A program made the translations under genes and the position numbers. DNA of 63,166 bases, filler included, from Perkinsus chesapeaki ATCC PRA-425 (Eukaryota; Protista; Perkinsozoa): NCBI GenBank assembly GCA_013115145.1. It is 11 parts of 11 records of this genome, joined end to end, with 100 filler letters (N's around TTAATTAATTAA, not from the genome) between each part and the next. Parts side by side here need not be neighbours in the genome. Positions count along the whole stretch, not along the records: positions 33,394 to 34,905 come from JAAPAO010001923.1; 10 more parts are not named here. One strand, 5' to 3'. Positions within the stretch are counted from its first letter, which is position 1; each line of letters begins with the position of its first letter. Below are positions 5,703 through 34,905 of this stretch, piece after piece. Below the pieces are notes generated by a model. The model was not told the DNA's origin and did no database searches. It saw only the letters and a list, made by a program, of their open reading frames with translations.

Positions 5703-8700
5703 ATGAAGGCGGAGCAAACCATGGAGGTTCTGATGCTTGTTGTTGTTGACTTGACAGTGCTCATAGGCACTGTCGATGAGGAAGCAGGAGCAGAAGGACG
5801 GTGCTGGTGGGGTGTTACGGAGGAGTTCTGATGACACTGTGCTGCGGAAGAGTGAGGGGTACTAGATGGATTAATGGGAGTCCCTTTGTAGGCTTCCTGC
5901 GCTTGGATAGCAGAAAGATATCATTATCGACGCCAGTGAGCCCGGCTATGGAGGGGACAGAGCCGACACAACCACAGCAACAGCACCAACAGAAGGAACA
6001 ACAATCGGTGGAGACAGCGCAACGTGGCCCTCCTAGAAGACAAGCCTCTGCATTCATGCAGCTGGTTAATACTGTAAGTGATGGATGAATGTACGCGGTA
6101 TACAACTCCTCATCATCATCATGAATTAGTTGGGATGCCTTTTGCGTCATCATTCAGAGCACATAACCGTGAGCTTTGGGAGGGAGATGTATCTCTTTTA
6201 GATACAGCGGCAGCGCAAGTCTGTTAAGAGAGGACGGAAAAGCCTGTTGCCTAAGGAAGGGGTAGGGCTGGCTGAGGTTGTTGTTGTGGGAGGGTAGTGA
6301 GATGGGTTGTAGTTGGCAAGCTCAGTGCGTGAGCTGTTCTTCAATTTAATGCTGCCTAGAGTATCAAGTTGGATATCTCAGAGGAGGAAGGCCCTCAGCA
6401 CAAGGGTTAAGGAGGATAGGGAGGTGAGGAGGAGGGGATGGGGGAGGAGCTTGCCGATATGCTTGTGGTAACTGTAGATGCTGCTGGCTCGTGGACTAGG
6501 TCAGGAAGCTGTCAAAAGTGCTCGGCGTCGAACTGATGTGTTCACTGACGTGGAGGAGGCCGGGCCAGCAGCGAAGCCACTGAAACGCGTGAGGCGTTCT
6601 GAGGGCTTGTTCAGGGAATACATACTTGCTGTAGAGGGGAAGCCAGCTCGGGCATGGTGTTCCTATACCAGAGTCTATAACGTCCGAACAGTTCTTTACT
6701 GGGATGGAGGTAGACAGGGGAGGAGGAGGAGGAGGAGGAGGAGGAGGGGAGCCAGGGTGAGGTTGGTGGTAGGTCTGGCGGGACATAATGCTGCGGACGA
6801 CGTGGGAGGATAAGCATAAGCTGCTTACACAGGAACCAAGGCATCATGAGTATATCACATGTTGTTTGATGGAGGTGAGGATATCTGAGCTCGAAGCGTG
6901 CAAGATACAGAATAGGTCAAGTGTAGTTATAATGATTCCTTTCAGCCCGAGGTTCTTCAAGTAAGCGCCCAAGTAACGCCAACTATAGAGGCCTTATTTT
7001 CGGGTTACCATAATACATCAGATCCATCGAAACGCTCTGCTGGCAACACCAGTAGGCGAGCATGGGTCGTCCCTCTCCCCGCCAGTGTGGTCCTCATCAG
7101 GCGATATGAGCTTCTCCACCTTCTTCCGTCTTCTAGTGGATCTCCAGTTGTTCCCTGATTTGGTCAGTTTCCAGCAGGCCAAGGTATAACACTTTATCCG
7201 TTCTTGTTGCTCAATGTCTCTCTCAGGAGGTATACCTTACTGTTGACTGCACGTCCCCAGCAAAGAAGCCTCACGCTTCTGTGGACGAGGCATCTTCAAT
7301 GGCCAAACGGTTCAGTGCGTTAAAGGATATCATGGTGACTATAAAGGTGATTGGTGGCTTGTGAGTGTGAGGATGGTAGATACTTAAGAGCCATAGTTGG
7401 ATGTATAAGGATGCCTCCGAGATGAGCCACATAGAAACAATGGCCTGGGCGGTGCTGTCAAGGGTGGAGGATTACGTGAATCAAAGGTGATGATGATGAT
7501 TGGCCCTGTGATGTTGGACTGCGGCAGCAGCCAGTGCAGGCTACTCAAAATAACGGATGTGTTTGGATCATATGACGCTGACGATAGCGGCTCCATTACG
7601 GCGGAGGAGCTGTTGGATGGTATAAGTCGGCTGGACTTGTAAGGGCAGTATATGGGAAGTGGTGTTGAGGTCTGGATGAAAGGTTCGATGAAATGGCAGA
7701 GAGCCTTACAGTGGAGGACATTGGAGAGATACTCAAATTGGTAGTAGTAGCAGTGGGATGCATCGCTCCTCCGCCTATATGGGGTGCAGAATTGTGATGC
7801 GCTGACTGAGGAGGGGGAGCTCTCGTTGAAGGAGTTTGAAAAGGTCCTTGGCCAAGTTAGGACGGCTAAACAGTATTTGAGAAAGCGGCAAAAGTGGGCA
7901 GCAGTGAGGGGACGGCGTCAACGAACTTCTTTAGTTTCTTCCTCAAGTCTGTGGGGGAGAAGTCCTGCATAGAGAAAAAAGCCACGGTAGGGTGTTATTT
8001 CGTGGCGCAGCGGTCATTGTAGGGCAGGTGGTGGTGAAGGCTATGGCTGAGTGGATCGAGCGGAAGTCATCGAATTTTGAGAAGGGTTGTCAAAAGCTCT
8101 TCAATCTGTTCGACACTGATGGCAGCGGTAGCATCACCCAGGTGGGGTCGCTCGTTTCTGTACCGAAAGAACTGTGCGGTGGCAGGACGAGTTTGCTGAC
8201 GGTATCATTCAACTTGCTAAGGATCACCATCTTGACTTGACGATAGACCTTACCAGTAGGGCTTGGGGGGGCAATGGAGGCTTATAGGAGGGTTGCTGTC
8301 AGTGGGGGAGATGAGGGACATCCTTCGCCTGTTCGACTATGGCCTGGACGGGTTCCTCCAGTTGGATGATATCCACAGCATGATCAAACGATACAACAAG
8401 GCCGCTGGGGTAAGGGACAGAAGGATAGGAGGGTGGCAATGAGGAGTTATGGCAGGAGCTGGCACTGACGCAGCAAGCTCAGCCGAGTAAGCCAGTATCG
8501 GTTGAGGTGTTTGGACCAGCGGCTCTGGCTGAGGCACTATGGAGGATAGCTATAAGACACTGTAGTAGACTGCTGGTGGCGTCTGTGGTGTGGGCGGCGG
8601 CTAGTGGGTGGCAGGCACCTATTCGATGGACTCGAAAGATTGTGTAGCCAGCCCTAGCTATGTTAAGATATGGTGGCTGTTGAGCTACTTAAGGATGACC

Positions 8701-12088: not shown

Positions 12089-12374
12089 CCACAACAATGC
12101 CGTTTCGTCGCCACGCTGGTGTGCTGGAGTGTCTCTACGCACGTTTTTAAGACTAGGCGGGGCGTCGACGACGGCAGCAGCAGCAGCGAGTCGGCGGCGG
12201 CTGTCCGTGAGCACCTGCTATTAGATTCTCGTAGCATTAGGTTGAGTAGAGTCGTTTGAAGGGATCACAGCAGACTCACGTCATCGACTGTTTCATCCAC
12301 GATCATATATTGATACCATTGTTGGGTGTAATAGATGGTGGGAGGGAAGGTGGAAGTGTGGCTCAGTTTATAGA

Positions 12375-13542
12375 ATGTTCAGTACATTTAAAGGCGAAAC
12401 TGACGATTTGCCGAATGACAACTATGACAGGCCACCCTCAGCGAGCCCGGGTGCAAGGCCTCCCTATGTTATAGTAGTACATAGCTGCAAAGGTGGTGTT
12501 GGTAAAAGTACAGTAGCCTTCAACCTCAGCATTGCCTTGGCGAACAGCGGCCTCGATGTCGGTAAGCGTCCACCTGTGATGTGGAACTGTTGGATGGTGC
12601 GCAGGTCTGGTTGATGCGGATGTGATGGGACCATCGCTGCCAGCTTTCGTGTCGCCCGAAAAAGGGCATATTTATTTCTCTAGGAATGAAAAGTGGGCCC
12701 AGCCTGTTCAGTAAGGAGATTCGCCCCTTCGAACTGCGTGAACATTGCATCGGTTAGATTCCCTATGCCCAGCGGTCGAGGGTCGCTGAGATGTCAGTCG
12801 TTTGGATGGCTTGATGTTAACAAGGTCTCGAAGCAAGGGGCTGGGCTCTCCGCTCAGAGTGCTAAAGAAGTTGTGGCGATGATGCTGACTCAGACGGACT
12901 TTGGCAGTACGCCCACTTGTCTAGGGAGATGCAAGTGGCCGGATTTCAGATATAACTCATTTGGTCGTCGACTGCCCGCCAGGGACGGGTGACATCCCTA
13001 ATCTCTTAATGGGAGGTGGAGTGCATCCATCATGCGCAGTAGTGGTAACCACGCCGCATAAGCTGTCCCTGATGGACACTAAACTTGGCGTGGATAAGCT
13101 CAGGCGGGACGGGGTAGGTCTGATATAACAAAGCTGCCGTTAGAGCGTGCGAGTGTAGGTTACTGTGGGAGCTATAGTGGAGAATATGGCCTATCTGGAG
13201 TGTCCGGATTGCGGAAAGATGATTCATCCCTTTGGTGACGCCAATCCCCGGTCAGCTTTGGGCCTTGGTCAGGAGGTAGGCGCCTGGGGATTGTCATTAT
13301 TGATGATATTTCTCACACAGGTACCAGTTGTTGAGCTTCCCATTGAATCCAGTCTCTCTTCGGATCTTATCGTCGATTCTGAGTCGGCAACAGGCCAGCG
13401 TTTTGCAGAGCTCGCCAGGGTTATCTTGGAAGCGTGTGAGGCATCGGGCAGCCCTCGAGGGGTCAAAGGTATTTATGACCGTTTGCCAATGGTCATACAG
13501 GACTGGGGGACTTTCATAGCCTGCCTCTCCGTCTCTATGTGA
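12375..13542 (+). CDS. Mrp/NBP35-family P-loop ATPase (Fe-S cluster carrier-like), multi-exon
   Basis: SCKGGVGKST, DADVMGPS, LVVDCPPGTGD, VVVTTP, GAIVENMAYLECPDCG…PFG. The 3' end is approximate. Confidence 0.9.
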
Positions 13543-33293: not shown

Positions 33294-33431
33294 NNNNNNN
33301 NNNNNNNNNNNNNNNNNNNNNNNNNNNNNNNNNNNNNTTAATTAATTAANNNNNNNNNNNNNNNNNNNNNNNNNNNNNNNNNNNNNNNNNNNNGGAATCT
33401 ATCTCTTCCCAAGATTCTCTGTGGGGGCTGT

Positions 33432-34905
33432 ATGAGGAGGCTAACGCGGTTTGATAAGAATCCAGGTGAATTTGAAGCGTGGAAACAGGACAAGCGGTTC
33501 TACGTCGATGCTTTGCAATTGGACTACGACCTGGTAGCTACTAGGAGTGACAGGTGTTCCCAAGAGGCGCGTTGCCGAGTTTGTGATATTGTCCACAATC
33601 CGAAGTCGAACGAGCTCCAGGCTAAGGAGTCTAACTTTCCTAAGAAAGGGCGCCCTTTGGAGCAATCGCCACCGCAACCCATTTGCAACAAATGCGGAGA
33701 GCCTTGGACCTTTGAACATGACTTGCGCCATTGTGCTAATGTCATGAAGCGACCAACTCGTTCGGCTGCTGCAGGTCGAGTCTTCGCTGAGCGAGTAAAG
33801 GCCAGAGGTTTCCTAGATGACCTGGTAAAGGAACATTTGCGGGATACCTTCGAGAGTGGTGGTGGCTCTGAGAGCTCCGCTACTCCATTACGGACGGGTG
33901 TGAAGCTAGACGGTCACACCTACCTTGGTATTACTCCCTACCGCTACGATGGTACCACAACTACCAAGAGCCTCTCTATAGAGTCCGCTAGAGACCTCTT
34001 GAGGCTCGGCCATCTTGGTCTTGGTAAGGACGGTGCTCGGAAGCTATGCGCAATTTTGGGACGCGAAGGAATATGCTTTCCGAATGGTGGCCTCGAGGAG
34101 TGTAGGAACGAAAAGTGGACTGTGTTCGGTCCCCTTTTCCGTAGCGAGGTTCTAGATCTGGAGATCGAAAGGCACCAGATCCCTTACTCCACGCCCTTTG
34201 GCCTGTGTATGGACGTGAGAGCTCTGTTAAATGTGGTGACAGATGGTGACGCTGACTGCATCTCCCGTCTCAAATTCCAGTTAGACGGTGGTAGGCAGTT
34301 CCTGAAGCTTTCAGTGAACGTCGTTTCTATTGAATCTGGTTGTCCATACGTTCCGGGTCCTAACAGTGTAATGAAAAACTTTGTCATTGGCCTTGGACAA
34401 GCTCTTGAGACTCCGCACAACCTTCGAAAGTTGTTCGAGTATCCATCAATCAGCGTGCTATTCAAGTCCGAAATGCCGAAGCAAATAGCTTGTGACCTCA
34501 AGGTGGCGGCCATGGTGGTTGGTATCCAGGCCGCTTCTTGCAAGTATCCTTGTCCTTTCTGCCTTTGGGTGAAAGGATGTGCCTGCGTCGGTGAAAGAGC
34601 AGCCTCTCGAGACTGGCAGTCTCATGACCGTGACTTTAAGAATGGTCACCATAATGTAGTCTGTGAGCCTTGTGTCTGCTGGCGCGACTCACCCATGGAG
34701 GTCATAGCTCTTGCTCCACTTCACTTACTGCTCGGTGTGGTCAACAAGGTGTACAAAGAGATCTGTCAAGGATTTGGCGATGCTTTCACTGCCAAGCAGC
34801 AGGATGCCTTGGCCAGGTACGGCATTAGACGTTCCTCGTATTTTCATGGTGACCTTGAGGGTAATGAATGCTCTCGATTCCTTGACGCAGTTTCAGAAAA
34901 CAAGA
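33432..34905 (+). mobile_element. RAG1/Transib/Chapaev-like DDE transposase, 3'-truncated by the contig end
   Basis: Intronless ORF with motifs in RAG1-core order: KFQLDGG, ACDLKVAAMVVGIQAASCKYPCPFC, LAPLHLLLG, GNECSRFL. N-terminal Cys/His clusters are present. Confidence 0.7.

Follow-up and report, generated by a model that had tools for sequence, protein, structure and literature searches.

The DNA examined in this study (the window) is a stretch of 63,166 nucleotides from Perkinsus chesapeaki ATCC PRA-425 (assembly GCA_013115145.1), in which 11 parts of the genome are joined end to end with filler between them. The part of interest, positions 33394-34905, is the whole of the 1512-bp contig JAAPAO010001923.1. 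This contig contains a single open frame on the plus strand (33396-34904) of 503 codons, which has no stop and is cut through by both contig ends; no second open reading frame (ORF) of note was found on the 1512 bp. The encoded protein (the window protein) was 51-57% identical to Perkinsus relatives of 750 aa, in an alignment free of frameshifts. The contig is very probably an internal fragment of a single intronless transposase gene, belonging to a DNA transposon family of the cut-and-paste type that is resident in Perkinsus. The predicted fold, the active-site layout and the anatomy of the element support a place for this family in the RAG1/Transib/Chapaev (CMCT) group.

An initial annotation of this locus had proposed an uninterrupted, intronless ORF starting at 33432 and encoding a RAG1/Transib/Chapaev-like transposase. 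The uninterrupted frame was borne out over all 503 stop-free codons. The start was not: 33432 is only the position of the first ATG, and the gene must begin beyond the contig, because the frame is already open from 33396 and the relatives align to the residues upstream. Approximately 70 N-terminal and 190 C-terminal residues are missing from the window protein because the contig ends, and unitigs from public sequencing runs extended the contig by 452 nt upstream and 650 nt downstream. The features of the ORF and of the predicted catalytic core are as follows, with residues numbered as in the window protein.

33396..34904, plus strand: internal fragment of the transposase ORF; open frame, colinear with the 750-aa Perkinsus relatives.
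33966..34904, plus strand: predicted part of a RAG1-like catalytic core (dimerisation and DNA-binding domain (DDBD)-like plus pre-RNase H region, the RNase H fold, the ZnC2 loop and the beginning of the helical ZnH2 region), placed by a model of the P. marinus protein PMAR020401 on mouse RAG1.
34272-34292, plus strand: KFQLDGG motif, which holds D297.
34284..34286, plus strand: D297, predicted first catalytic Asp; D in 88/89 sequences, on the first strand of the RNase H fold.
34491-34502, plus strand: CDLK motif, which holds D367.
34494..34496, plus strand: D367, predicted second catalytic Asp; D in 89/90 sequences, pairing with the D of DEK in RAG1 and BbRAG1L.
34545-34562, plus strand: YPCPFC motif, which holds C386 and C389.
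34551..34562, plus strand: C386-x2-C389, predicted C(2)C zinc ligands; each Cys in 90/90 sequences, pairing with CTLC of RAG1 and BbRAG1L.
34713-34736, plus strand: APLHLLLG motif, which holds L442 and H443.
34719..34724, plus strand: L442-H443, LH motif; L in 89/90 and H in 90/90 sequences, pairing with the LH of RAG1 LHCDIG.
34860..34883, plus strand: GNECSRFL (G489-N490), the last conserved block before the contig end; G in 87/88 and N in 71/88 sequences.

Conservation was assessed in an alignment of 91 family sequences (alignment A3), for which PMAR020401 (P0002; 758 aa) from Perkinsus marinus provided the reference numbering; the window numbering is offset from this by 64-68 residues. The near-invariant columns were D363, D433, C452, C455, L506, H507, G557, H627, H632, E653, E657 and H660, and the first seven of them are present in the window as D297, D367, C386, C389, L442, H443 and G489. 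D363, D433, C452, C455, H627, H632, E653 and E657 were each kept in at least 98% of the alignment. The four motifs named in the initial annotation were found at their positions, and judging by the alignment their occurrence in the window is not due to chance, because the columns on which they fall are nearly invariant. The two predicted catalytic Asp residues are 70 residues apart, and C386 and C389 lie 19 and 22 residues past the second. The same spacing is seen in mouse RAG1, with D708 followed by C727 and C730 (+19 and +22), and with the two His residues (H937 and H942) five apart as in the family.

As the annotation had anticipated, the region carrying the catalytic Glu is lost at the contig end; full-length relatives (approximately 750 aa) place H-x4-H and a Glu block, S-E-Q-S-G-E, some 130-160 residues beyond the end of the window protein. 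Two Glu columns in this block, E653 and E657, are both conserved in the family. In the profile alignment E657 pairs with the second Glu of the corresponding BbRAG1L block, which presumably corresponds to the catalytic E962 of mouse RAG1, and either E653 or E657 may be the catalytic residue.

By itself, the window protein had no match in Pfam and none in a sequence search of the PDB, and a Perkinsus-only profile of 16 sequences gave no match either. Only the profile of all 91 family sequences reached amphioxus BbRAG1L (6b40_A, E 1.3e-6) and mouse RAG1 (E approximately 1e-3); HzTransib was not matched in the PDB by this profile at E values up to 10, and the Pfam RAG1 core families did not match the window protein at E up to 10. 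The pairing of motifs with RAG1 proposed in the initial annotation was recovered for the most part: DLK paired with DEK, PC-x-WC with CTLC, LHLLLG with LHCDIG, and GN-x-C-x-KLL with GNFARKLM of RAG1 and GNYARELF of BbRAG1L. Past the contig end, K-x-H-x4-H paired with LHKVIEH and SEQ-x2-E with SSEGNE. The first Asp (KFQLDGG) lay outside the profile sequence alignment; it falls within the span of the structural alignment (model residues 257-707 on RAG1 460-1007).

AlphaFold was first given the window protein itself with 10 sequences, and the resulting model was poor (pLDDT 53). The chains of RAG1, BbRAGL and HzTransib filled the first 45 places in its Foldseek search, with TM-scores of 0.25-0.29 that were too low for use. 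A second model, of PMAR020401 with 91 sequences, had a mean pLDDT of 82.3 and a pTM of 0.66, with values above 90 in the core. Searched with this model, Foldseek gave RAG1, BbRAGL or HzTransib for each of its top 49 PDB matches, the best at E 5.6e-12 and with TM by target reaching 0.59; the next fold was the P element transposase at E 2.4e-3. Structural alignment with VIA gave a Z of 22.9 for mouse RAG1 (418 residues, 4.0 A, residues 257-707 of the model on RAG1 460-1007), 22.4 for HzTransib (386 residues, 3.4 A) and 20.8 for BbRAGL, followed by the P element at 13.0 and Hermes at 8-9. An exhaustive VIA search of 48,161 representative chains, independent of Foldseek, returned the same ranking. 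The match is not confined to the RNase H fold but takes in all of the core, beginning at the dimerisation and DNA-binding domain and ending with the C-terminal domain. The model places D363 on the first RNase H strand (355-365) and D433 directly after the strand 428-431, a predicted placement that is the usual DDE geometry. The structure search suggested in the initial annotation thus had its best matches inside the RAG1/Transib fold, with the next fold at Z 13.

A search of a viral structure library gave no solid match. The best was a 200-aa Sylvanvirus protein (E 1.5e-4), and a weak match (E 2e-3) was to a 544-aa bracovirus protein (BFVD O92526, Bracoviriform inaniti). One insect bracovirus is reported to contain Chapaev transposons (PMC4079192).

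To describe the element, the genomic surroundings were taken for six relatives, two from P. marinus, one from Perkinsus olseni and three from the ENA assembly ERZ20067936. All six were bounded by terminal inverted repeats (TIRs), and all twelve ends read CAC(G/A)GGTG or its complement. The six copies, with their target-site duplications (TSDs), were:

L001, P. marinus GG679899: 3110 bp; TIR of about 197 nt (finder arms 213 nt, 95%); TSD GCGT.
L005, P. marinus GG671513: 1924 bp, deleted copy; TSD CTCA.
L004, P. olseni, L004:3501-6140: 2640 bp, deleted copy; TIR of 173 nt, 99%; TSD CAACC.
L002, ENA ERZ20067936: 3951 bp; TIR of about 820 nt, 96-100%; TSD AAGT.
L003, ENA ERZ20067936: 3716 bp; TIR of 133 nt at 98%, with lower identity beyond; TSD ATTA.
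L006, ENA ERZ20067936: 5472 bp including a nested element; TIR of 740 nt, 99%; TSD without a clean match.

Complete copies in the relatives were 3.1-4 kb long, with TIRs of 0.17-0.8 kb and one long intronless ORF per element. One repeat tip of the family is CACGGGTG. The TSD was 4 bp in four of the six copies (GCGT, AAGT, ATTA and CTCA), where the chance of a 4-bp match at a fixed boundary is 1/256 each, and 5 bp in one (CAACC). The latter might reflect either a variable stagger or the chance match of an extra base. The CAC-starting repeats and the duplications that the initial annotation had envisaged were recovered from the relatives. The RAG2-like partner that it had also mentioned was not: no such second ORF was found between the repeats of L001 and L002, which are filled by the single ORF and have no room for a second gene.

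Several further observations concern the repeats. Those of ERZ20067936 were 0.74-0.82 kb long (L002:9047-9865 and 12158-12997; L006:2982-3727 and 6394-7133), compared with 0.17-0.2 kb in Perkinsus, and in L002 the right repeat overlaps the final 99 nt of the transposase ORF. The right repeat of L006 is split at a TA by a nested insertion of approximately 1.3 kb (L006:7130-8445), which has its own inverted ends (CAGGGTGGCTCATAAGTT...) with TA on both sides. The ORF of this insertion (7292-7954) had HTH_32 and PAX-type homeodomain-like matches, as in Tc1/mariner-type transposases. The tips of three diverged elements, L002, L005 and L006, have ACGAAAA(T/A) in common, equally far from CAC(G/A)GGTG in each (positions 19-26 counted from the end). 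The end is thereby bipartite: 11 nt separate a heptamer-like tip from an A-rich block, in a loose likeness to a 12-RSS (recombination signal sequence). The tips of L001 (P. marinus) and L004 (P. olseni) carry a T-rich block instead, and because of this the resemblance may be due to chance.

In a word-index protein search with the window protein, all named matches were from Perkinsus and were annotated as hypothetical proteins. They included PMAR020401 (51% identity), PMAR008500, PMAR006364 and PMAR015675 of P. marinus, with several more in P. olseni and P. chesapeaki; at 41-44% identity to the window protein, the search also returned ENA proteins 680-750 aa long. When 1.84 billion representatives were searched with a profile built from ten Perkinsus-type sequences, 1689 proteins matched at E <=1e-3 and 700 at E <=1e-10, many of them of 650-710 aa and matched nearly end to end. 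One match was a transcript of the amoeboid protist Pompholyxophrys punicea. Neighbours in the ESM Atlas included clusters labelled Cnidaria and Porifera, a nematode cluster with Pfam DUF1280, and RAG1 clusters. The animal taxa of the wider family (Cnidaria, Porifera, Nematoda) are known through these cluster labels only, because the named proteins in a word-index search with the family profile were again only from Perkinsus.

In a FastTree phylogeny of the 91 sequences, the window protein grouped with the Perkinsus proteins (support 96), which formed one clade with several diverged subfamilies and then joined the ERZ20067936 sequences (support 100). The Perkinsus and ERZ20067936 clade had a long stem of 1.2 substitutions per site, and was just 20-28% identical to the other sequences of the 1689-member family. 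ERZ20067936 contained clusters of 11-12 near-identical, variously truncated proteins on different megabase contigs, which show proliferation in that organism. The P. chesapeaki gene model FOL47_011307 (P0011) joins the C-terminal part of a phosphoribosyl-pyrophosphate synthetase (Pfam Pribosyl_synth and Pribosyltran) to a transposase; this fusion is likely due to faulty annotation, or to an insertion into or beside the synthetase gene.

As Perkinsus infects bivalves, the sequence could in principle stem from the mollusc host, by contamination or by recent transfer. Host-parasite transfer of Chapaev elements has been proposed in animals, and the nearest relatives outside Perkinsus belong to a eukaryote of 34% G+C (ERZ20067936). 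A host origin is nevertheless scarcely credible. In P. marinus the copies are on contigs of 1.02 and 0.48 Mb, where the neighbouring genes encode ribosomal proteins L7Ae, L1 and S8, a GNL3-type GTPase, aspartic proteases and an eEF1A-like protein. Relatives were found in three species (P. marinus, P. olseni and P. chesapeaki), and the G+C of the contig (51%) fits that of the Perkinsus loci (46-50%). Two independent studies that sequenced the same organism both had the stretch covered by the contig almost complete in their runs (98% and 80-83% of sampled words), and in the second it was >99% identical. Twelve differences between the data sets, which may be between strains or copies, comprised 7 synonymous and 5 non-synonymous changes. 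Outside Perkinsus, no relative of >44% identity was found by a word search of 5.8 billion clusters (approximately 15 billion proteins) or by the profile search of 1.84 billion representatives. The protist origin is genuine and host contamination, which the initial annotation had raised as a concern, is excluded, because the relatives lie on contigs with Perkinsus housekeeping genes and occur in three species, the G+C matches, a second study has the same stretch, and the sequences fall in a Perkinsus clade. The annotation had also offered a wider host range or horizontal transfer from the invertebrate host as explanations; the former holds, with an alveolate host, and recent transfer was unsupported given the lack of any relative of >44% identity outside Perkinsus. 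An old exchange with some invertebrate is possible.

The N-terminal ~190 residues of PMAR020401 are rich in Cys and His, of which H22, C30, C33, C79, C82, C131, C134, C168, C171 and C183 are conserved; the conservation counts for this region were made in 57 full-length family members. The first His and the first CxxC of the zinc module resembling ZAD lie upstream of the contig. The following N-terminal features are present in the window:

33420..33431, plus strand: C9-x2-C12, putative second CxxC pair of the ZAD-like (ZFa-like) module; PMAR020401 C79 and C82 kept in 56-57/57 members, with weak zf-AD/ZAD matches.
33555..33584, plus strand: C54 and C60-x2-C63, putative C-terminal ligands of the second (ZFb-like) zinc site; C131 and C134 invariant in 57/57.
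33684..33734, plus strand: C97-x2-C100 ... H108 ... C113, a further small zinc-finger-like motif; PMAR020401 C168, C171, H178 and C183 invariant or nearly so.

In mouse RAG1 the ligands of the NZD are H102, C110, C113, C175, C178, H206, C210 and C213 (preprint 10.64898/2026.01.24.700457). The family pattern, H22-x7-C30-x2-C33 ... C79-x2-C82 ... C-x-C131-x2-C134, mirrors the order of these ligands and the H-x7-C-x2-C spacing. A profile of the N-terminal region placed three ZAD structures first (E 0.045-0.22) and matched the RAG1 NZD (21wb) over the whole domain at E 0.69, all of which are weak matches; zf-AD was matched in Pfam by 4/57 full-length members. An NZD-like 'Chapa' domain, with a ZAD-like first module, has been described only in RAG1/RAGL and Chapaev (preprint 10.64898/2026.01.24.700457). 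The ligand pattern is suggestive of a resemblance between the N-terminal domain of the family and this ZAD-like NZD/Chapa domain of RAG1 and Chapaev.

The CMCT clade comprises EnSpm/CACTA, Mirage, Chapaev, Transib, Plavaka, ESTA, Lanisha and RAG1, and its lineages share C(2)C and H(3-4)H motifs, 5'-CA...TG-3' termini and duplications of 2-5 bp (Kojima 2025, PMC12730594). The family has the corresponding conserved acidic, Cys and His residues, CA...TG termini, duplications within the 2-5 bp range and a RAG1/Transib-type core fold, and by these hallmarks it is almost certainly a member of the clade. Within it, Chapaev is the most likely lineage, an assignment that we hold with moderate confidence. 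The published hallmarks of Chapaev are TSDs of 3-4 bp and termini that are invariably CAC...GTG, together with C(2)C, LH and H(4)H in the protein; the duplication is TWA in Chapaev3 (PMC4079192). The family has 4-bp non-TWA TSDs, CAC...GTG at the twelve ends, C452/C455, L506/H507 and H627/H632. The Pfam families DUF1280, DUF1258 and Transposase_21 stand for the transposases of Chapaev, Mirage and CACTA, respectively (Majorek et al., PMC3985635). DUF1280 was matched by 9/57 full-length members (best E 6.4e-7), and none of the 57 matched the RAG1 families, DUF1258 or Transposase_21 at E up to 0.01. For the RAG1/Transib/Chapaev label of the initial annotation this means that the group stands and that Chapaev fits best, with canonical Transib and RAG fitting less well.

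It is also conceivable, if rather unlikely, that the family forms a separate unnamed CMCT lineage, or belongs to a little-described one such as Lanisha, with the same fold and chemistry. The 1.2-substitution stem and the 20-28% identity of the Perkinsus and ERZ20067936 clade to the rest would fit such a lineage, as would the lack of any Pfam match among the Perkinsus members. Moreover, C(2)C and H(3-4)H are also found in the newly split lineages Plavaka, ESTA and Lanisha, and the Chapaev entries in the published tree are all from animals (Kojima 2025). Against it stand the presence of every published Chapaev hallmark, DUF1280 as the sole transposase Pfam family matched by members, and the N-terminal zinc domain, as domains of the ZAD/NZD type are reported to be specific to RAG1/RAGL and Chapaev.

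An origin as a canonical Transib or RAG-like (RAGL) transposon, and hence as a direct relative of the RAG1 ancestor, is improbable. In its favour, the PDB searches by structure and by sequence had their best matches among RAG1, BbRAGL and HzTransib, the duplication of one copy is 5 bp long, and the CAC tips are as in RSS heptamers. However, RAG1 and Transib are the only possible top PDB matches for any CMCT member, as no CMC structure is present there. Canonical Transib is set apart by 5-bp duplications as opposed to 2-4 bp in CMC, and four of the six copies have 4 bp. In addition, 0/57 members matched the Pfam RAG1 families, no RAG2-like second ORF was found in the complete copies L001 and L002, and canonical Transib lacks an NZD-like domain, whereas the family has a conserved zinc domain.

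A Dada transposon was considered as well, since this DDE superfamily is known from P. marinus; we give it next to no probability. Dada elements of P. marinus are intronless, with weak HHpred similarity to retroviral integrases and Mu transposase, and the Asp spacing of 68 in Dada-U6_DR is close to the 70 observed here. Dada has, however, a DxxH after the second Asp and targets tRNA and snRNA genes, whereas the family combines CxxC and H(4)H with a RAG1 fold, and no tRNA gene was found at the six insertion loci. Dada identity was ruled out by motifs, fold and target sites.

By analogy with RAG1/Transib biochemistry and general DDE chemistry, we infer the following mechanism. The protein would consist of an N-terminal multi-zinc domain and a core of approximately 450 residues with the RAG1/Transib fold. 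The core would hold an RNase H-type DDE centre (D297 and D367 in the window, with the Glu past the contig end) with an inserted C-x2-C/H-x4-H zinc site, which may brace the helical insertion against the RNase H domain. A transposase dimer would bind both repeat tips, and a nick at the CAC boundary would free the element, probably via hairpins on the flanking DNA as in RAG and Transib. The 3'-OH ends would then be joined to target DNA with a 4-bp stagger.

The uninterrupted frame in the window, and the 7 synonymous changes among the 12 differences as a hint of constraint, would also be seen in a host gene domesticated from a transposase and no longer mobile. Such a domestication is very unlikely. 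The relatives are flanked by inverted repeats of 95-100% identity and by target duplications (these are the flanks of the relatives, not of the window copy), and they are located at many unrelated sites, in truncated and internally deleted forms. Copies in the relatives are multiple, deleted (2.6 and 1.9 kb) and nested, consistent with a resident transposon family.

Two observations from public runs concern copies close to the contig sequence. A 75-nt unitig of depth 59 (run X1) joins 33475 to 34833 via TGAGAA and skips 1357 nt of the ORF; it appears to come from a non-autonomous copy of this element, with an internal deletion, in the same genome. Over 34091-34241, run X3 contained two unitig variants of the same 151 nt, of depths 165 and 66, which differ from the window 6 times and once, respectively; they indicate that the strain has two alleles or two close copies.

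Several points weigh against the reading of the contig as part of a Chapaev-type transposon. The contig has neither a repeat end nor the catalytic Glu, and its stretch was present in no RNA run among the public runs searched. The Perkinsus proteins themselves had no DUF1280 match, so that the Chapaev assignment, which we regard as somewhat better than even, draws on the hallmarks and on transitive Pfam matches. Every match of the N-terminal domain had an E >0.01. Of the six copies, one has a 5-bp duplication, the length found in Transib and RAG, and one has no clean duplication. The PDB copy that was searched contained no solved CMC structure, and for that reason the fold match is unable to separate Chapaev from Transib. 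Finally, the hairpin step is borrowed from RAG and Transib.

The kind of element is known, as regards its CMC/Transib chemistry and anatomy, and the host is new; Repbase or Dfam may hold an unpublished Perkinsus entry. The statement of the initial annotation that the superfamily is mostly described from animals agrees with the Repbase-derived CMCT tree of Kojima 2025 (PMC12730594), in which the Chapaev and Transib entries are all from animals and there is no Perkinsus entry. Chapaev has been described from animals and a bracovirus (PMC3985635, PMC4079192), and in the literature searched Dada was the only DNA transposon superfamily found to be described for Perkinsus. Tentatively, and with less than even confidence, we suggest that the elements of Perkinsus, ERZ20067936 and Pompholyxophrys might be genuine non-animal Chapaevs, with an NZD/Chapa-type zinc domain on a RAG1-fold core, and that some Perkinsus copies might still be mobile. 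If so, the NZD-plus-core architecture that led to RAG1 would be older than animals, or would have moved between eukaryotic supergroups, and Perkinsus copies with an intact ORF, repeats of 95-100% identity and clean duplications could provide this parasite, in which genetic work is difficult, with a transposon tool of its own.

RAG1, which assembles antibody genes in vertebrates, originated from a transposase of the same structural group, and the Perkinsus transposase is predicted to share its fold and active-site layout. Where and when the zinc N-terminal domain and the catalytic core of RAG1 came together is under debate, and the arguments have relied almost entirely on animal sequences. A well-preserved family from an alveolate parasite with a predicted RAG1 fold, the same layout of active site and zinc ligands and a look-alike N-terminal domain broadens the sampled range, and the compact 3.1-kb, one-gene, intronless element is open to biochemical testing. 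The results also explain a set of 'hypothetical proteins' in three Perkinsus species as transposases, and suggest that a pathogen of commercial shellfish (oysters and clams), for which genetic tools are scarce, may have an active DNA transposon.

Among known systems, the Chapaev elements (Chapaev-1/2_BF, Chapaev-1..3_ACa and the Hydra Chapaevs) have in common with the Perkinsus family the C(2)C/LH/H(4)H motifs, CAC...GTG termini, 3-4 bp TSDs, a single ORF and a DDE core, and the ZAD-like first N-terminal module of their Chapa domain may have a counterpart in the N-terminal domain of the family. The Perkinsus family differs in its alveolate protist host, its long repeats (0.17-0.8 kb) and its one 5-bp TSD, and its proteins have diverged too far to match DUF1280 themselves. 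The likeness to RAG1 and BbRAG1L lies in the whole-core fold (Z 21-23) and in the order D, D, C-x2-C, LH, GN..R.L, H-x4-H, E; the family differs from them in having no RAG2-like partner and no RING domain, in an identity of approximately 13% and in 4-bp rather than 5-bp TSDs, and the nonamer-binding domain of RAG1 is outside the alignment, as matches begin at RAG1 residues 452-461. Transib (HzTransib) is similar in fold (Z 22.4, with the form in the hairpin-forming complex), CAC termini, single ORF and cut-and-paste DDE chemistry, and differs in its 5-bp duplications and in having no NZD-like N-terminal domain, in contrast to the conserved zinc domain of ~190 residues in the family. EnSpm/CACTA and Mirage share C(2)C, H(3-4)H and CA...TG termini, whereas Transposase_21 and DUF1258 were not matched by any of the 57 full-length family members; the TSD is 3 bp in EnSpm, which usually has a second ORF, and 2 bp in Mirage. 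Like the family, Dada of P. marinus occurs in the genus Perkinsus, has an intronless ORF and encodes a DDE transposase; it is distinguished from the family by the DxxH motif, another fold neighbourhood and strict tRNA/snRNA targeting.

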